64,000 nt of DNA, taken from positions 682,001 to 746,000 of the forward strand of contig OZ251246.1 of the NCBI GenBank assembly GCA_965240325.2, written 5' to 3'. The translations under genes and the position numbers were made by a program. This document shows, one piece after another, positions 3,292-13,781 of the stretch (positions are counted from its first letter, which is position 1; each line of letters opens with the position of its first letter). This stretch comes from Rebecca billardiae RCC1528 (taxonomy: Eukaryota; Protista; Haptophyta). The notes below the pieces were generated by a model that made no database searches, was not told the DNA's origin, and saw only the letters and a program-made list of their open reading frames with translations.

Positions 3292-4866
3292 CTAGCTCGG
3301 CGCCGCCGCCGGGCCATCGGCGCCGCCGCCGCTCGGCGCAGTGTACTGCTCCAGCGCCGCGTCGGCGCGGCCGGTGCTCAGGTCGCAGCCGAGGGGCAGC
3401 TCAGCGCTCGGCTTGACCCACACCGCGCCCGTGCGCAGCGCGCGCGCGAAGCTGCTCGCGCGCGCCGCGCTGCTCGTCCACACGCCGGCGGCCAGCGTGA
3501 ACCGAGCGTCTGCCGCGCGCGCCACCGCCTCCTCGTCAGTCGAGTGCTTGAGCACGCAGAGCACGGGCCCGGCGGAGGCGGCGCGCGCGATGGTCATGTG
3601 GTCGCGCACCTCGGCGAAGACGGCCGGGCGCATGAAGTACCCCACGCCGCCGAGCACCTCGCCGCCCGCCACGAGCCGCGCGCCCTCCGCGCAGCCCGCG
3701 CGCACCTGCCGCTGCGCGAGCCGCAGGCCGCTCGAGCTGACGATCGGACCCTGGCCCGTGCGCGCGTCGAACGGGTCGCCGACGTGCACGTGCGCGGCGC
3801 GCTCGGCGGCGCGCGCGACGAACTCGTCGTACACCTTCTCGTGCACGAACACCCGGCTGTCCGTCGCGCACAGCTTGCCGTGGCTCGAGAGTGCCGCGCG
3901 CACCGTCTCCTCAGCCGCCTGCGCGACGTCGGCGTCCTCACACACGATCGCGGCCGACTTGGCGGAGAGTGAGTCGTACGCGACCTTGTTGACGAGCGGG
4001 TGCGCGGCGAGCGCGGTGGAGGTGGACGCGTCCGGGCCGGCGAGCACGTTCAGCACGCCCGGCGGCACGCCCGCCTCCGCCGCGAGCTCGGCGACGCGCA
4101 GCAACGAGAGCGGCGCCTGCCGCGGCGCCCTCAGTACCGCCGTGTTGCCCGCCGCCAGCAGCGGCGCGACTTCCCACATGCCCATGAGGAGCGGGCGGCA
4201 GGTGGGGATGATGGCGGCGACGACGCCGACGGGCACGCGCGGCGACGTGTCCGGCGCGCGCAGCGCCGTGCCGTGCGTCCAGCTCGCGCCCGAGAAGGCG
4301 CGCAGCAGCGCCGCGCTCAGTGGCACATCGGCTTCTCGCACGCACGAGAAGATCTTGCCGCCGTCGAGGGTCTCGAGGGCGGCGATCTCGTCGGCGTGCG
4401 CGTCGAGCGCGTCGGCGAACCGGCGGAGCAGCGCGCCGCGCTCCGCCGCCGACATGCGCGGCCACGGGCCGCGGCGGAACGCGCGATCTGCCGCGCGCAC
4501 CGCCGCGTCGACGTCCGCCTTGCCCGCCTCGGCGACCGCGCAGATGGGCTGTGCCGAGCGCGGGTCGATGGTGTCGAAGGTGCGCCCGCTGACCGAGTCG
4601 GTTGGCGCACCGTCGATGAAGAGCCGCGTCGCCGTCGGTATCGGCGCTTTCGCGCCGCGCGCGCGCGTGGCCGCGCGCGCGACCGTCTCGAGGATGCGCG
4701 CCGCCGCGCGCTCGTCGGCGCGCGCCTGCTGCAGGGTGGACAGAGCGCGTATGCTCGGCAGGAGGCGGGTGGCGGCGTAGAGTGGCGCGGCGAGCGCCGG
4801 GGTCGCCGCTGGCAGCGCGCGTGCCAGCGGCACGAGCGGCGAGTGGCTGGAGAGCGCGAGTAGCAT
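3292..4866 (-). CDS. Aldehyde dehydrogenase family (ALDH1/2-like) protein, probably mitochondrial, with degenerate catalytic and cofactor motifs
   Basis: Motifs LFIDG..SVSGRTFDTIDP, ADVDAAVRAA, ETLDGGK, AGVPPGVLNVL, GDPFD...QGP, GYFMRPAVF and LAAGVWT. ATG at 4866 is preferred over the TTG at 4917, and the Arg/Ala/Ser-rich N-terminus resembles a presequence. Confidence 0.85.
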   Translation of the reverse strand: MLLALSSHSPLVPLARALPAATPALAAPLYAATRLLPSIRALSTLQQARADERAAARILETVARAATRARGAKAPIPTATRLFIDGAPTDSVSGRTFDTIDPRSAQPICAVAEAGKADVDAAVRAADRAFRRGPWPRMSAAERGALLRRFADALDAHADEIAALETLDGGKIFSCVREADVPLSAALLRAFSGASWTHGTALRAPDTSPRVPVGVVAAIIPTCRPLLMGMWEVAPLLAAGNTAVLRAPRQAPLSLLRVAELAAEAGVPPGVLNVLAGPDASTSTALAAHPLVNKVAYDSLSAKSAAIVCEDADVAQAAEETVRAALSSHGKLCATDSRVFVHEKVYDEFVARAAERAAHVHVGDPFDARTGQGPIVSSSGLRLAQRQVRAGCAEGARLVAGGEVLGGVGYFMRPAVFAEVRDHMTIARAASAGPVLCVLKHSTDEEAVARAADARFTLAAGVWTSSAARASSFARALRTGAVWVKPSAELPLGCDLSTGRADAALEQYTAPSGGGADGPAAAPS

Positions 4867-5423
4867 GGTTTGTGGCCACGGGGAAGTGGCCGAGGAAAGG
4901 GCGGAGACCGTTCGCAATCTGCGCGCCCGGCCGGCCGGGCGCAGCGGCAGGGGGGGGACGGGTGGAATGGGAATGTGCCGGCGACTCGGCGAATAAAGCG
5001 CCGAAGCACTTGAGGTTCACAAATTCCACCAGGCCACTGATAGATGGGTAACACGCCTCTGCCGCCGCCGGGATTGGCCGACCGAGCGCGTGTGAACCTT
5101 CACTTTCAAGCCGAAAAGAATATGGGGCGATCGCGCCCCAATGAATGTTGAACGCGTGATCCAAAAGCAAGATCGAGTCATGGGGATTCGACCCTGATTT
5201 CATCAACCTCTTGAGTAGCTGTAGAGTAGGCCCATCAAAATTAATGCCGTTTCGCTCCGTTCGCCCGCCCGACTTTCATAATAATGATCGGCTCAGAGCT
5301 TCGGCGCTCTTGTGTCCGATGGTGTTCCAACTCATGATCATTGATGATGATTTACAATAACTTTACTCACCGTAGCCATCATCTTGCAGCCTGCCTAGCT
5401 GACAGCTGTGTACGCGCGGGCCA

Positions 5424-8146
5424 TCACTGCCCCGGCGGCGGCGCGCGCGGCGCGGGCTGCCCGCGCGGCCGCCCCTCCGCGCCGCCGCCTTCGCGGAGCA
5501 CGGCGCTCGCGCGCTCGAGCACGGCGCGCGGGAAGCCGGCGACGCGCGCCGCGTGCAGCCCGTACGAGCACGGCGCGGCGCCGGGCTCGAGCGAGTAGGT
5601 GAACTCGACCGCCTCGTCGTGCGCGAGCGCGGGCTCGGCGTCGGGCGTGCTCGGCGGCGCGCCGTCCGCCCCGCCACCCGCCGCGCCGCGCCCTGCGCCG
5701 CGCTCGACGGGCTTGGCGCCCATCTGCGCGGCGGCGACAAGGCCAGGCAGCTCGTTGGCGAGCTCAGTGAGTGCGTGGTAGTGTGTGGCGAAGAGCGCGC
5801 GGCAGCCGACGCTCGTGGCCAGGTGCTCCGCGACCGCGCGCGCGATCGCCTCGCCGTCGTCCGCGCTCGTGCCCCGCCCCACCTCGTCGAGCAGCACGAG
5901 GCTCGCCGCGCTCGCGTGCCGCAGGATCTCGGCAGTCTCGCGCATCTCGACGGTGAAGGTGGAGAGACCGCCGCCGATGTCGTCGACCGCGCCGACGCGC
6001 GTGAAGACGCGGTCGGCGAGCGTGAGCGTCGCCGCGTCCGCCGGCACGAAGCACCCCGCCTGCGCCATCAGCTGCACCAGCCCGAGCGTGCGCAGGTACA
6101 CAGACTTGCCGCCGGCGTTTGGGCCCGTCAGAATCAGCATGGCCGCCGCGCCGTCGCCCGCGCGCGCGGCGGCCGCCGGCGCACCGCCGCGCGCGGCGGG
6201 CGAGCCGGCGTGCCGCGCGTGCGCCGCCGCGTGCGCGGCCGAGCCGCCCAGCGCCGCCGGGTTGGGCACGAACGCGCCCGGCGGCAGCAGCCGCTCGACG
6301 ACCGGGTGGCGGATGTTCTCCGCGCGCAGCACGTGCGCCGCCGGACCGGGCTCGGCCGGACCGCCGCCCGGCTCGGCCGGACCGCCGCCCGGCTCGGCCG
6401 GAGCGCCGCCCGGCTCAGGCGGCGCGGGCAGGATGTGCGGCCGGCAGTACCCCTCGTCCACGGCGGTCTGCGCGAAGCTCGCGAGCGCGTCGACGCGCGC
6501 GACGAGCGCGCACGCCGCGCGCGCCGCGTCGGCGTACGCGTCGATCTCGCCGAGAAGCTTCTCGAACGCGGCCGTCTCGAGTGCGACGATGCGGCGCGTG
6601 GCGCGCGCGAGCGCCGACTCGCGCGCGCGCAGCTCGTGCGTGCTGAAGCGACGCTCGCGCTGCGCGGCGCAGGGCAGCTCGAGCCAGCCGTCGGGCAGCG
6701 CGCCGCCCGCCTTGCCGCCGCCGAGCAGCCGCAGGCCCGCCGCGCTCTTCACCTGGATGAACCGCTCGCCCGTGCGCGCGGTCGTCACCAGCCGCAGCGG
6801 AATCTGCGTGCGCGCCGATTCCAACACTTCGAACTCTGCGAGGTACGCGCGCGCCGCGGCGGCGCGCGCGCGCTGCGCCGAGAGCTCGGCGCACGCGACC
6901 GAGGGCGCGATCACCGCCTCGCCGCCCTCGCCGCCGATCCGCGCCGGCGGCTCGTCGACGAGCGTGCGGCCAATCAGATCGCTCAGCTCGGACAGCGCCG
7001 CGCGCGCGCGCGGCTCCAGGGGCGAGAGGAGGGCTGGCCAGTCAGACGATGGCGGCGGCTGCTGCTGCTGCTGCGGGTGCGGCTCCAGGGGCGAGAGGAG
7101 GGCTGGCCAGTCAGACGATGGCGGCGGCTGCTGCTGCTGCTGCGGGTGCGGCTCCAGGGGCGAGAGGAGGGCTGGCCAGTCAGACGATGGCGGCGGCTGC
7201 TGCTGCTGCTGCGGGTGCGGCTCCAGGGGCGAGAGGAGGGCTGGCCAGTCAGACGATGGCGGCGGCTGCTGCTGCTGCTGCGGGTGCGGCTCCAGGGGCG
7301 AGAGGAGGGCTGGCCAGTCAGACGATGGCGGCGGCTGCTGCTGCTGCTGCGGGTGCGGCTCCAGGGGCGAGAGGAGGGCTGGCCAGTCAGACGATGGCGG
7401 CGGCGGCGGCTGCTGCTGCTGCGGGTGCGGCGGCTGCTGCTGCGCCGCCGCCGCCGCTGCGCTGGCGGCGCGGGCGGCGGCGGTGTCCTCGGCGGCGGCG
7501 GCGTGCGCCGAGCCGCCGCCGAGCCCGCCCGACCCCTCGGCCGCGCCGCGCGCGCTCGGCTGCGCGCCCGCCGCAGCGGCCGCCGCGGCCGGCCCGAAGA
7601 GCGCCCGCCTCGCGCGAGCGTCGTCGCCCAGCGCGGCGGCGCGCGCGCCCTCCAGCGCGGCCTCGATGCGCGCGAACGCGCGGATCGAAGTCCGGATCGT
7701 GCCGACGCACTGCGGGCTCGCGCGGCGCGTCTGCACGCGCGTGAGCAGGCGCTCGACGTCCTTGAAGCCACGCAGCGCGCCGCGCAGCGCCGCGCGCCCG
7801 CCGTGCGCGCCCGCGAGCGCGGCGACCGCGTCGTGTCGGCTGATGACCGTTGGCCGGTGGGTCGAGGGTCGGGAGAGCCACTGGCGGAGCAGGCGCGAGC
7901 CGACCGCGGTGCGCGTGCGGTCAAGCGCCCAGAGCAGCGAGCCGCGCCGCTCGCCCGTCCGCGCGGTGCGCTCGATCTCGAGATTGCGCCGCGCCGCCTC
8001 GTCCAGTTCCATACTGTCCCCGAGCGCGTAGACAGTTGGCGGCCGCAGCTGCGGCATGCGGATTCGGCCCGCTCGCGGCGCGTCGGCGGTGCTGAGCAGG
8101 CCGTCGGCGTCGTCCGCGGCGTCGGCGTCCGCGTCCGCGTCCGCGT

Positions 8147-8178
<32 letters not shown>

Positions 8179-8726
8179 GAGTCGGAGTCCGCGTCGGCGT
8201 TCGCGTCGGTGGCGGCCTCCGCGCCGCGCGCGGCGTCGGCGCGCGCGCCACCGCTCGTGGCGGCGCGGCGTCGGCGCGCACGGCCTGTGGTGGCAGGGGC
8301 CGCAGCTGCGCCCTTCGCGCCCGCGGTGGCGGTGGCGTTGGGCGCGGCGGTCGTGTCGCGCGGCGCGAGCTTCTCCACCTCGTCCGCCGCCGCGGTCGTC
8401 TCGCGCACGTAGCCCAGCAGCGCGCCGAGCGCCTGCGTCGCGCGCGCGTGCCTCCCGAGCCCGAGCGCTTGCAGCGGCGCGCCGCCGTAGTGAGTGGCGA
8501 TGGCTGCGGCCGCGCGCGCCTCGCAAAAGGCGCGCGGCGGGAGCAGCAGGTAGCGCGCGCTGGCGGGGGCCCAGCTGGGCACGTCGGGGCACGAGCGCGC
8601 CTGGCCGGGCAGCAGGCAGCGCGGCACGACGCGCGTGCCCTCCTCTCCCTCGGCACTCGCGCCGCCGCCGCCGCCGCCGCCGCCACCGCCGCTGCCGCCG
8701 CCGCTGCCGCCGCCGCCGCTGCCGCC

Positions 8727-8757
<31 letters not shown>

Positions 8758-10757
8758 TAGGGCACGAGGATCTCGGCGGGCGAGATACGCGCGAGCTCGG
8801 CCGCGAGGGCGCTCGGGGAGGATGACTCCGTGGCCCACACCTCGCCCGTCGAGATGTCGGCGTACACCAGCGCGCTCGGCGGCGCCGCCGCGCTGGCGGC
8901 GCTGGCCCCGGGCAGCCCGGCCGCCGCCGCGCCCGCGCCCGGCGCGGCCGCGTCGTCTCCCGGACTTTCGGAGCCGGAGCCGCCGGAGCGGTGCGTGGGC
9001 CCGCCCGGCAGCAGGACGGCGAGGAAGTTGTGCTCGGGCGAGAGCCAGCCCTCCTCGAGCAGCGTGCCCGGCGTGAGCACGCGCTCGAGGTAGCGCTTCA
9101 CGCGCGGCCGGCCCGCGCCGTCCGCGCCGACGGTGTACTGCTGGCACACCGCCACGGAGACGCCCGCCTCGAGCAGCGAGTGGCAGTGCGCGCTGAGGCG
9201 CTGGTGGGGGAAACCCGCCATGGGCACGTTGACGACCCACTGCCCCGCGCCGGCGCCGGCGTCCGGCTCGGCGCGCGCGTCGTCGCCCACCCACACCGCG
9301 CCCGCCATCGGCGGCGCGCCCGGCTCGCGCCACTCCGCGCTCCGGCGTAACTGCCGCCGTGTAACGGTCATGTCCAGAGTCCGGCCCAGCAGGGTGGCGT
9401 CCTCAAAGTACGCCTCGAAGAAGTCGCCGATCCGGACGAGCAGGAGCGCGTGCTCATGCCGCCGCTTGTCGCGCACGTACCGCTGCAGCATGTCCGGCAG
9501 CTTGCTCACGTCGACCGTGCGCGTCGTCACCGCGACGCCGGCCGCGGCTGCGCCCGACGCGCCGGCGCCGCGCGCGCTCCGCACGCCGCCTGTCGCCTCC
9601 GGCGCGCCCGCGCCCGCGCCCATCTCAGAGTCCTCGGGGGCGAGGGCACCCGCGATCGGCTCGAGCTCGGCGTAAGGATCGCCCGCCGCATCGGCATCCA
9701 CGTCGGCGGCCCGCGCGGCCGGCACTGCCGCCCATGCGCCGCCGTCCGCGCGCTCCGCCGCCTCCGCCGCCGCCGCCGCCGCCGCCGCCGCCCCCTCCGC
9801 CGCCGGCTCCGCCGCCGCCGCCGCCGCCTCCGCCGCCTCCGCCTCCGCCGCCTCCGCCGCCGCCGCCGCCGCCGCCTCCGCCTCCGAGTGGGCGGCGGTC
9901 GGCGCGCGCCGCCGTGCGCCCGAACGCGCCGCGCTCGCGGCGGCTCGCGCGCCCGGCCTCGCGCCGCGCGTGTCCAGCTCGAACGCCGTCGCCTTCAGCC
10001 GCGGCACCGACAGGCCGTACTGGAGGTCGAGCCGATCCACGATGGCCGCCAGCAGCCGGCAGTCGTCGAGCGCGCGGTGCGTCGGCCGGAGCGCCGCGAC
10101 GTCGAGCTCGAAGAAGCGGGCGAGCGCGTCGAGCGACATGCGCTCGGGCGCGGCGCGGACCCACGGCTGCCTGAACAGCTCGCGCGCCACCGCGAGCGAG
10201 TCGGCGAACCGCCAGCCCGGCGGCAGCGCCAGGCCGGCGCGCGCGAGCTCGGCCGCGAGGAACGGAGCGTCGAACGCTCGGCAGTTGTGCGCGCACAGGA
10301 TGGCGTGCTCGCCGACGAAGTCGTGCAGCGCGCGCAGCGCCTCGTCGGCGGAGGGCACGCCCGGCGCGTGCACCTGCGCGTCCTTGAGCCCCGTCAGCCG
10401 CGAGATCGTGCCGCGCACGCGGTGCGCGGCCCCCGGGTTCACGAGGGTCGAGAAGGCTTCGCCGCTGGCCGGGTCGAGCGCGCCGATCTCGATGACGCGG
10501 TTGCGCGTCTTGGAGAGCCCCGTCGTCTCGAGGTCGAAGTAGAGGAGCCGCGTGCCACGCGCCTCCGCCGCGCCCTCCGCCGCGCTGCGCGCGGCGCCGT
10601 CGCCGCCGTCGGCTGGCGCTACCGCCGCCGCGCGCATGGCGAGGGCGTGCGAGCGCGCAAGCGGCGCGACGCGCGAGCGCACGAGGGCGGCGCGCGCGCC
10701 GCCGCGCTGGAACGAGGCGAGGGCCGCGATCATCATCAGGCGCCACGCCACGCGCAT
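5424..10757 (-). CDS. mutS: MutS1-type mismatch-repair ATPase fused to an N-terminal DEDDh 3'-5' exonuclease; putative plastid targeting; about 1777 aa
   Basis: Exonuclease motifs: YFDLETTG, AHNCRAFDAPFL, HRALDD. MutS domain I: RIGDFFEAY, PMAGFPH, RVLTPGT. Domain III: RRNLEI..GSLLWALDRT. ATPase: TGPNAGGKS, FTRVGAVDD, STFTVEM, LLDEVGRGT, FATHYH, SYGLHAARVAGFP. ATG at 10757 starts MRVAWRLMMIAALASF. Confidence 0.9.
7012..7428. repeat. 69-bp tandem repeat x6 inside mutS, encoding PHPQQQQQPPPSSDWPALLSPLE
   Basis: Unit ggctccaggggcgagaggagggctggccagtcagacgatggcggcggctgctgctgctgctgcgggtgc starts at 7012, 7081, 7150, 7219, 7288 and 7357. Confidence 0.95.
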
Positions 10758-10949
10758 GCACGCCCACCAGCGCGAGCGCGCGAGGGCCGCCGCCCGCGCG
10801 CGAGCGCCAAGCTCCGCGCGACGACCTCGTGAGCAGCCTCGGCCACGCGTGCGCTTCCGTGAGAGACGGTTGGTCACTGCGCCGGACCGCCTTCGACCGC
10901 TGCCCGACCGACGGGCGACCGCCCGCCCCGCCGCGCCGGTCCCCGGCGC
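10758..10949. promoter_or_regulatory. Probable bidirectional promoter (about 190 bp) between exo-mutS and the CmcJ-like gene
   Basis: Head-to-head ATGs at 10757 (-) and 10950 (+). Confidence 0.5.
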
Positions 10950-11885
10950 ATGGCGTCGCTGCAGCGAGGAGCGCTCTTCGCCCGCCGTCGGATGTCCACG
11001 GCGCCGTGCGTGCTGGGCACGCTGCACTACCAGGACCGCGTCCCGGGCAAGGGCGTCGGGCGGTACATCGGCGTGGAGGACCGAGGCGAGCTGTGCGACG
11101 TGCACAAGCCCGTCGAGGCGCCGATTCTCGACGCGCGCGCGATGCAGCCGGCGCCGTCGCTCCGGACGACGGGCTTCGAGCTGCTGCGCGCGCCGAGCTC
11201 CGCGGGCGACCTGCGAGACGACGCCACCGTCGAGAGCGCGTACTATGACGAGGTCATCGCCCTCGTCAAGCGCGCGACGGGCGCGACGCACGCGCTCGTC
11301 TTCGACCACACCGTGCGCGAGACCGGCCGGACCAACCTGAACACGCTCAACGCGCCGGGCGCGGCGGCCGCCGTCGTGTCGCGCGTGCACTCGGACTACA
11401 CGGACGAGGGCGCGCCCCGGCGGCTCCGCCAGCTCGTCGCCTCGGGCGCGTTCAAAGGCACGATCTCGCAGGCCGAGATCGGCCGCTTCCTCGACGGCGA
11501 GCCGCGCGCCGGCCACTACTTCATGTTCCTCAACGCGTGGCGCAACGTGGACCCGTCGCGGCCCGTGCTACGCTCGCCGCTCGCCGTGTGCGACTGCAGG
11601 TCGGTGGCGCGCTCCGAGCGCTTCCCGTACACGATGGTGTACAAGGACCGCGTCGGCGAGAACTACTCCCTCGAGCACGCGCCGCACCACCGCTGGGCGT
11701 ACTTCCCGCGCATGGCGCACGACGAGGTGCTGCTCTTCAAGGTGTTCGACTCGCGGCCGGCCGTGCCGGGGTACGTGTTCCACGCGGCGTTCGAGGACCC
11801 GACGACGCCGCCCGACGCGCCGCCGCGCGCGTCGATCGAGTGCCGCACGGTCGCCTTCTTCGACGGCGCCGAGGCGGGGGCGTAG
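10950..11885 (+). CDS. CmcJ/NvfI/AsaB-family oxidoreductase (Fe(II)/2OG-type hydroxylase/desaturase-like)
   Basis: Motifs GFELL, YYDEV...TGA..ALVFDHTVR, VHSDYT, NAWR, PLAVCD, HRWAYFPRM..DEVLLFK.FDS, HAAFEDP and PRASIECR. Confidence 0.85.
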   Translation: MASLQRGALFARRRMSTAPCVLGTLHYQDRVPGKGVGRYIGVEDRGELCDVHKPVEAPILDARAMQPAPSLRTTGFELLRAPSSAGDLRDDATVESAYYDEVIALVKRATGATHALVFDHTVRETGRTNLNTLNAPGAAAAVVSRVHSDYTDEGAPRRLRQLVASGAFKGTISQAEIGRFLDGEPRAGHYFMFLNAWRNVDPSRPVLRSPLAVCDCRSVARSERFPYTMVYKDRVGENYSLEHAPHHRWAYFPRMAHDEVLLFKVFDSRPAVPGYVFHAAFEDPTTPPDAPPRASIECRTVAFFDGAEAGA

Positions 11886-12089
11886 TATGAGGACAATCGG
11901 TGATGCGCCCTGTCGGTGAGTGTCGGGCCGTATTCGGACGAGGCTGCCGTCAGCACTCAGAGCAACCGGCGAGCCGAGTCCGAAACTCTTGATGGCTGCG
12001 CGAGGCCGTGAGACCTGAGACATGAGACTGGGTGCCAGCACGAGTGCTGCAAGGCCGCGCCGCGTACGGGATGCTACGACTGTATTGTA

Positions 12090-12303: not shown

Positions 12304-13781
12304 ATGCCGTCGTCGACGACGCACTGCAAACGCACATCGCCAGTCGCACGCGTCGCGTTGGTGCTGGCGTTGCTGCAGGTGGTGTCCGGCGCCCTCCGAC
12401 CGACGCTCCGCACGCGCGTCCTAGGCCTCCGAATGGGCCTCCCCGAGGTACCGATTGCGTCGACGCATTCGGGCATTGATCTCGAGCGCGATGTGTACCT
12501 GCACCCGGACGAGAAGCCCTACTCGGACGGCTCACGCCCGGCGGGTGCTCCCGAGCTTGCGCAGTCTAATTTCAAGCGCCAGTTCGGCGCGCTCGCGCAG
12601 GGCGCGTGGGAGACGCTCGTCGGCCGCGAGGTGACCAACACGACGATGCCCGAGTGCCTTGGGCTCACGCTGTCCAACGCGGCGGTCACCAACGCTGAGA
12701 GGCGGCGTGAAGCGGCGAACGGCGGCGTCGACGCGCACCCAGTCTCGCGCGTCCTCTACAACGTCGGCTGCTTCTTCCTGGACAACTTCTTCGACGGTCG
12801 TCCCATCCAGCGCTTCTGGTTCCTCGAGACAGTGGCGCGCATCCCGTATTTTTCGTGCGCGCTTGGCGCACCTCAAGGCAGCCGCGCGCCGCGCGCGCCA
12901 CAGCGCGCGTGGCGCCCTCAACGAGGCGGGCTACGTGGGCCCACCCGTCTCTCCCGCCCGCCCGCGCGCGCCCGCGCGCGCCGCCCGCCGCAGCTACACG
13001 TCGATGCTCCACCTGTACGAGTCGTTTGGCTGGTGGCGCGTGCCCGAGCTGCGCAAGGTGCACAACGCGCAGGAGTGGAACGAGGTAGCGCGCGCAGCCC
13101 GCGGGCGTGTGGGCGCGTGCGTGCCTCTCGGGCGCGGGGGGCGCCCTCAGCGCGCCCCCTGCCCACCCCGCCCGCCCGTGCCCCCGCGTGCTGCAGCTGC
13201 ACCACCTCCTGATCATGGAGGCCCTCGGCGGGGACGCGCTGTGGTCTGACCGTTTCCTCGCGCTGCACGCGGCGATCGTGTACTACTGGTTACTCATACT
13301 CACCTTCCTCTTCTCGCCGCGCATCGCGTACCAGTTCATGGAGCTGCTCGAGGCGCACGCGGTGGACACGTACTCGACCTTCGTCAAGGAGAACCGGCCG
13401 CGGCTCGAGGCGCTGCCGCCGCCCGCCGTCGCGCGCTCCTACTACACGGGCGCAGACCTGTACATGTTTGACGACTTCATGATGCGCGAGGCGGGCTCGC
13501 GCCGACCGCCGTGCGACAGCCTGCTCGACGTGTTCGTGAACATCGCGGAGGACGAGGGCGAGCACGTGAAGACGATGCGCGCGTGCCAGGACTACGCGGT
13601 GCTCGGCTCACTCGTGCTCAGCCCGCACCTCGACAAGCGGCTCGAGCCCATGGACGGCCGTGGCTCGTTCGACGGCAGTGTGCGGCCAACGACACAGTCG
13701 CCCGAGAAGCGCGCCGCATGGGAGAGCTGGGCCAGCGCGCTGCACGAGGAGATGCGGCACGGCGAGGCGGCCGAGGGATGA
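12304..13781 (+). CDS. PTOX: Plastid terminal oxidase (alternative oxidase family); exons 12304-12854, 12994-13084, 13197-13781
   Basis: The spliced product reads [30 protein letters not shown]...EWNELHHLLIMEALGG...WSDRFLA.H.AIVYYW...AYQFMELLEAHAVDTY...NIAEDEGEHVKTM, containing the diiron ligands. GT-AG introns at 12855-12993 and 13085-13196 restore the frame. There is a hydrophobic signal-like N-terminus. Confidence 0.92.

Follow-up and report, generated by a model that had tools for sequence, protein, structure and literature searches.

A probable DPD1-type exonuclease-MutS1 fusion protein in the haptophyte Rebecca billardiae

A gene coding a 1777-residue protein, in which an amino-terminal 3'-5' exonuclease precedes MutS1, was identified in a 64,000-nucleotide stretch of DNA from the haptophyte Rebecca billardiae RCC1528 (contig OZ251246.1, positions 682,001 to 746,000; this whole stretch is the window, in whose numbering coordinates are given). 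The protein is probably a single polypeptide composed of a targeting presequence, a DPD1-type exonuclease, a flexible tether and a cyanobacterial-type MutS1. It would belong to the DPD1-MutS1 family and act by excision coupled to mismatch recognition. The first-pass annotation of the window presented an amino-terminal exonuclease joined to MutS as an unrecognised architecture, which is incorrect, and had named prior cataloguing among the outcomes that would refute it. The arrangement had been catalogued in Viridiplantae, whose cyanobacterial-like MutS1 commonly carry an amino-terminal 3'-5' exonuclease (PF00929) that is orthologous to DPD1 and has conserved active site residues (Sloan et al. 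2024, Plant Cell, PMC12292046). In green algae that lost MutS1 the same exonuclease is fused to RecG. The fused exonuclease was proposed to carry out mismatch repair chew-back or to act on invading recombination strands, and loss of the cyanobacterial-like MutL was considered as perhaps tied to the gain of the nuclease domain (PMC12292046). Cyanobacterial MutS1 in photosynthetic eukaryotes had been reported in 2021 (PMC7884376). Haptophytes are mentioned in neither of these two publications, and the literature search retrieved no paper pairing DPD1 with haptophytes. The new element is the lineage, a haptophyte; no new question is opened, since the literature already contains both the architecture and the proposal that excision proceeds independently of MutL.

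The fusion gene and its coding extent

The coding sequence (5424..10757, minus strand, as are all features of the gene given below) lies in a stop-free frame that covers 5424..11516 in the list of open reading frames (ORFs). It codes for 1777 residues, ends with the stop at 5424-5426 and has no internal stop or frameshift. Between about 10700 and 5430 this frame has a GC content at third codon positions (GC3) of 0.84-1.00, which drops to ~0.5-0.6 just beyond the stop. On the upstream side, past about 10850, the GC pattern in the fusion frame shifts: first-position GC nears 1.0, which over 10850-11900 is typical of a plus strand gene. The edges of the GC3 block and this switch of pattern place the start of the coding sequence at the ATG at 10757, the most likely start codon, with the ATG at 10637 as alternative. 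The GC content is 79% in the coding sequence and about 86% in its linker. The gene is a nuclear gene from a GC-rich alga.

The fusion gene is judged to be real, intact and well preserved, which confirms the initial observation. The claim that a single frame joins an intact DEDDh exonuclease to MutS1 through a linker was borne out by Pfam matches, motifs and the 1777-residue coding sequence, and the domains anticipated from the sequence (RNase_T PF00929, MutS_I, MutS_II, MutS_III and MutS_V) all matched above their gathering scores. The first-pass annotation had placed the exonuclease accurately (at about 10030-10550, for a domain now delimited at 9993..10550), and the Ala/Glu-rich linker, which it estimated at ~180 residues, was found to have about 165 (residues 256-419). 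Its series of MutS domains I-V is borne out by Pfam for domains I, II, III and V and by the GDFFE, Walker A and Walker B motifs; domain IV can be aligned, with its Pfam model (MutS_IV) below threshold.

Presequence and exonuclease domain

The amino terminus (residues 1-69; 10551..10757) is a presequence made of the hydrophobic stretch WRLMMIAALASF followed by an Arg/Ala/Ser-rich region. Its hydropathy peaks at 2.2-2.3 at residues 6-16, and Arg and Lys (11 residues) outnumber Asp and Glu (4). Comparable amino termini are found in P0003 and in the upstream-extended ORF of P0001, the ortholog described below. The presequence is a candidate bipartite plastid/organelle targeting signal.

Residues 70-255 (9993..10550) form the DEDDh 3'-5' exonuclease domain, assigned to the DPD1 type, in which Pfam RNase_T matches residues 73-239 (E 9e-19). 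The motifs ExoI FDLETTG (D75, E77; 10518-10538), ExoII HNCRAFD (D163; 10269-10289) and ExoIII HRALDD (H227, D232; 10062-10079) are all present, and their five catalytic residues align with those of the plant fusion proteins. The domain also has in common with these proteins the DPD1-family signatures STLVNP and WRFxDS. Its AlphaFold model (pLDDT 91) has Arabidopsis DPD1 (Q682U6) as top fold match in Swiss-Prot (E 2.5e-16, TM 0.79, 33% identity), followed by PolC and epsilon proofreading domains, and a profile search of solved structures retrieved the PolC exonuclease, TREX1/2 and DnaQ. The NCBIfam equivalogs of DnaQ (epsilon) and PolC, with which the domain shares fold and motifs, were all far under cutoff (e.g., 74.7 for a cutoff of 245). 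The fold match of the model and the nearest full-length relatives place the exonuclease in the DPD1 lineage and not in another DnaQ-like group.

The MutS1 part and its inserts

MutS domain I (mismatch binding; 9063..9500), which carries a lineage-specific insert, is matched by Pfam MutS_I in two stretches (E 2e-21) and holds the Phe-X-Glu motif in the form GDFFE (F446, E448; 9414-9428). Domain II (connector; 8394..9062; MutS_II, E 3e-11) has Ala and Gly/Ser runs at 8660-8756. It is followed by a low-complexity insert (8013..8393) with an (Asp-Ala)n array at 8102-8241, whose counterpart in P0001 is shorter and aligns poorly. The next region (6315..8012), colinear with P0001, comprises domain III (core/levers; MutS_III in two stretches, E 6e-40) and the divergent clamp region that corresponds to domain IV. 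Domain V (ABC ATPase and carboxyl-terminal helix-turn-helix; 5427..6314; MutS_V, E 4e-64) features Walker A GPNAGGKS (6102-6125), Walker B LVLLDEVGRGT (5868-5900), the STF signature (STFTVEM) and the His loop (FATHYH). The protein passes the NCBIfam MutS equivalog NF003810 (569 bits, cutoff 480) and stays below both TIGR01070 (474, cutoff 641.7), whose match is interrupted by the inserts, and the mutS2 model (138, cutoff 400). No Pfam match to a GIY-YIG, HNH or Smr endonuclease domain was found in the fusion protein at E <= 0.01.

In-frame simple repeats ((Asp-Ala)n, Gly/Ser, Ala/Glu) swell the protein to 1777 residues, compared to ~1260 in the ortholog. Domain III is in addition interrupted in frame by a tandem repeat of 6.1 copies of 69 nucleotides (7010-7431; 98% match between copies; 23-residue unit HPQQQQQPPPSSDWPALLSPLEP) that is missing from P0001 and may reflect a minisatellite that expanded recently, an in-frame intron or an artefact of assembly.

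Among the best 120 matches of the MutS part every named protein is cyanobacterial, with 35-40% identity. In maximum-likelihood trees a branch with support of 99 parts cyanobacteria and the plastid-lineage eukaryotic MutS1 from the other sampled bacteria. Both the matches and the trees assign the MutS part to the cyanobacterial, presumably plastid-derived, type and support the organellar role that had been read from the sequence at the outset.

The linker and the continuity of the fusion

Exonuclease and MutS domain I are joined by a low-complexity Ala/Glu/Gly linker (residues 256-419; 9501..9992) that includes a (GCN)n array coding Ala/Glu runs in frame (9737-9886). The linker GC3 is 0.88-0.94, to be compared with a GC of ~0.55 in the non-coding DNA beside the gene. 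The spacing between ExoIII and Phe-X-Glu amounts to 211 residues here, 112 in P0001 and 89-135 in the group of eukaryotic fusion proteins named group B below. In land plants it is mostly 277-301 residues, with 138 in Selaginella P0017. The domain matches, the uniform linker GC3 and the architecture kept in relatives all argue for the fusion. The continuous GC3 and the single ORFs of the relatives suggest that both domains reside on one mRNA and one polypeptide.

Relatives with the same architecture

The closest named relative is found in Pavlovales sp. CCMP2436, a pavlovophyte haptophyte. At its locus (L002 6439-10341, MU632051.1) exonuclease exons are followed by same-strand exons that code the first part of MutS domain I with its GDFFE motif. 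The ExoIII and MutS-I exons lie between AT-rich introns and are followed by a gap of ~5.1 kb of N. The annotated model of this locus, KAJ1617371.1 (235 residues, "ribonuclease H-like"), is truncated and mis-spliced at ExoIII. P0001, which comes from an independent assembly (Logan contig of 4255 nucleotides), codes the exonuclease and then MutS in one ORF of 1261 residues with an in-frame stop upstream. This 62%-identical ortholog is colinear with the window protein throughout, with 54-64% identity over the aligned blocks and a linker of about half the length.

A word-index search with the window protein was swamped by low-complexity words and gave one match; P0001 and P0004 were used as queries instead. 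When 1.84 billion representative proteins were scanned exhaustively with HMMER, the part of P0001 from the exonuclease to MutS-II being the query, the best full-length matches were P0004 (EukProt), proteins from Cymbomonas tetramitiformis, Riccia, Selaginella and Adiantum, and other plant fusions. RNase_T-RecG fusions were also among the matches. The eukaryotic fusion proteins P0004, P0324, P0325 and P0326 are designated group B; three extra members were obtained by further search, one of them coded on a compact, intron-free metagenome scaffold. The search of other proteomes suggested in the first-pass annotation thus gave the fused architecture in P0001, the CCMP2436 locus, group B, Cymbomonas and land plants.

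Group B genes (the ENA metagenome scaffold L083; P0004, P0324, P0325) are compact and intron-free, have 46-56% GC, and their models start near ExoI. On L083 a spacer of 294 nucleotides behind the fusion gene carries a duplicated T-rich motif. A viral origin of group B was considered and rejected for the IMG/VR collection, in which only unfused MutS (28-40% identity) were found and the exonuclease part was unmatched. The land-plant DPD1-MutS1 P0007, P0011 and P0017 have a weak carboxyl-terminal match to PF23007, the DnaA_N-like domain of STICHEL (E 1e-4 to 3e-7), which passes the cutoff only in P0017; the window protein and group B have no match to it. The P0031 cluster of RNase_T-RecG fusions has 221 members (Tara, JGI, ENA) and is far commoner in marine metagenomes than the MutS fusions.

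Phylogeny of the two domains

In the MutS tree the window protein and P0001 pair with support of 100 and have group B as sister (89-90). A 91% branch separates these proteins, together with those of Cyanophora, Cymbomonas and land plants, from red algae and cyanobacteria. In the exonuclease tree, which contained no bacterial outgroup, three pavlovophyte sequences group together (94/90) and are joined by group B (80/65) and then by Cymbomonas (80/74). The two trees are compatible, so that both halves fit one fused unit. Note that the tree results are affected by long branches and skewed composition.

It is conceivable, if rather doubtful, that the DPD1-MutS1 unit reached the red-plastid lineage (pavlovophytes and group B) whole, by inheritance or by transfer, and replaced the MutL-dependent step, plastid repair then being MutL-free. 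Recognition of a mismatch would in that case directly license the tethered exonuclease to act 3'-5' from the 3' end of a nascent or an invading strand. The green/glaucophyte-like, and not red-algal, affinity would then mean either that the fusion predates the Archaeplastida split or that it was transferred from the green lineage to a haptophyte.

Proposed mode of action

The signal-peptide-like start and the cyanobacterial ancestry suggest import of the protein into an organelle, for which the plastid is the most likely candidate. A MutS dimer would bind a mismatch via Phe-X-Glu and turn into an ATP-bound sliding clamp, and the tethered exonuclease would degrade the strand offering a free 3' end. 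If this 3' end belonged to a newly synthesised strand, at a fork or a gap, the outcome would be repair, while degradation from the 3' end of an invading strand would lead to rejection of mismatched recombination. Mismatch sensing and excision would be linked in this way, and no exonuclease would have to be recruited separately. A DEDDh 3'-5' exonuclease can neither nick DNA nor choose a strand; the 3' end must therefore come from replication, recombination or another nuclease, and strand choice would come from the 3' end itself. For the same reason the "one-protein repair system" put forward in the first-pass annotation is incomplete as stated.

Alternative explanations

Several points weigh against a single, functional and organellar fusion protein. 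The search for RNA runs across the whole gene listed none; a search for runs of any type over 9000-10800 listed only runs from unrelated organisms that matched 5-7% of its words, and four such runs aligned to the gene gave only GC-rich scraps of 28-48 nucleotides, with no spanning piece. The P0001 contig could be cDNA or genomic DNA. MutS_IV is under the Pfam threshold, though the domain IV region aligns with relatives, and several long inserts of low complexity may be introns kept in frame or may disturb function. Organelle targeting is read from sequence alone, and the group B gene models have no presequence. Finally, shuffling the linker at matched composition also leaves it stop-free in about 42% of cases; the open linker frame is by itself weak evidence because a stop-free linker is expected by chance in GC-rich DNA. 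This last point is the basis for the view that exonuclease and MutS1 are two adjacent genes whose spacer is open by chance in DNA of 79-90% GC, a view to which the abundance of long spurious ORFs (e.g., 1090 residues on the opposite strand) and the exonuclease-only KAJ1617371.1, the only annotated pavlovophyte model, also lend weight. This two-gene view is very improbable: the linker has the GC3 of coding sequence and not the composition of the flanking non-coding DNA, no fewer than 12 relatives from four or more lineages carry the two domains in a single ORF with differing linker lengths, and KAJ1617371.1, mis-spliced as described above, ends before same-strand MutS-I exons that precede the scaffold gap.

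With a single fused protein retained as the probable reading, its main job might still be other than post-replicative mismatch correction, an alternative that is less likely and deserves consideration. In recombination surveillance MutS would detect mismatched heteroduplex and the exonuclease would destroy the invading 3' strand, while in a DPD1-like degradation or salvage of organelle DNA MutS would serve as the DNA-loading module. In Arabidopsis DPD1 breaks down the DNA of both plastids and mitochondria, an alternative fusion partner of the same exonuclease is the recombination-surveillance helicase RecG, and fern fusions persist despite loss of Phe-X-Glu; recombination control is also listed as an alternative by Sloan et al. 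(PMC12292046). The intact Phe-X-Glu and ATPase motifs of the window protein fit genuine mismatch recognition. Note that the sequence does not tell these roles apart and that they are not mutually exclusive. A further alternative concerns the origin of the fusion: a red-algal-derived MutS1 would have convergently captured a DnaQ-like exonuclease, apart from the green DPD1-MutS1. Haptophyte plastids are red-derived, red algae carry unfused MutS1, the exonuclease domains of land plants sit on a long branch of their own, and the AU test did not reject a clade uniting red algae with pavlovophytes and group B (p = 0.28). Such convergence is nonetheless improbable, as both domain trees put the pavlovophytes beside group B and near Cymbomonas (exonuclease 80/65 and 80/74; MutS 89-91), a clade of all fused proteins was not rejected either (p = 0.39), and the exonuclease carries the STLVNP and WRFxDS signatures of the DPD1 family.

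Neighbouring genes

The downstream neighbour (3292-4917, minus strand) codes for an aldehyde dehydrogenase (Pfam Aldedh, E 5e-102). Upstream, the plus strand ORFs 10950-11885 and 12304-13212 have no Pfam match; the former fits the plus strand gene signature at 10850-11900. The upstream neighbour in CCMP2436 is MRS2-like, and synteny was not shown.

Comparison with known systems

The range of DPD1-MutS1 is widened from Archaeplastida to an alga with a secondary plastid and to at least one further eukaryote group, and an architecture retained in lineages so far apart probably has a function. The compact, intron-free versions (window gene, P0001, group B) are perhaps easier to express and assay than the land-plant proteins of 1,200-1,900 residues.

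The closest likeness of the window protein is to the DPD1-MutS1 of Viridiplantae, such as Physcomitrium patens MutS1, Cymbomonas KAK3249950.1, Riccia KAL3686956.1 and Selaginella XP_002981449.1. They have in common the amino-terminal PF00929 DEDDh domain with its five catalytic residues, a disordered linker and a cyanobacterial-like MutS1 with its ATPase motifs and Phe-X-Glu, and both are presumed to act in an organelle. The window protein differs in its host, a haptophyte with a red-derived plastid and not a member of Archaeplastida, in its signal-peptide-like presequence and in a linker shorter than most of those of land plants. It also has many GC-driven low-complexity inserts and a six-copy in-frame minisatellite, its MutS_IV is under the Pfam threshold, and it has no counterpart of the STICHEL-like DnaA_N domain weakly matched at the carboxyl terminus of land-plant fusions.

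Each half also resembles proteins that lack the other. Arabidopsis DPD1 (Q682U6) has the same DEDDh motifs and acts in organelles as a Mg-dependent 3'-5' exonuclease. It is a stand-alone protein of 316 residues whose known role is organelle DNA degradation in pollen and senescing leaves and not excision directed by mismatches. Cyanobacterial MutS1 (Trichocoleus, Leptolyngbya, Nodosilinea), similar across the whole MutS part (35-40% identity), have no exonuclease domain and act with MutL and separate exonucleases. The green-algal DPD1-RecG proteins (Micromonas, Ostreococcus, Volvox type; P0018, P0031, P0034, P0131) carry the same amino-terminal exonuclease on an organellar DNA-binding motor, their partner being a branch-migration helicase and not a mismatch sensor. 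Plant MSH1 (GIY-YIG), MutS7 (HNH) and MutS2 (Smr) likewise combine a MutS-family ATPase with a nuclease in a self-contained sensor-cutter. In these proteins a carboxyl-terminal endonuclease makes the break, whereas the amino-terminal exonuclease of the window protein would need an existing 3' end.

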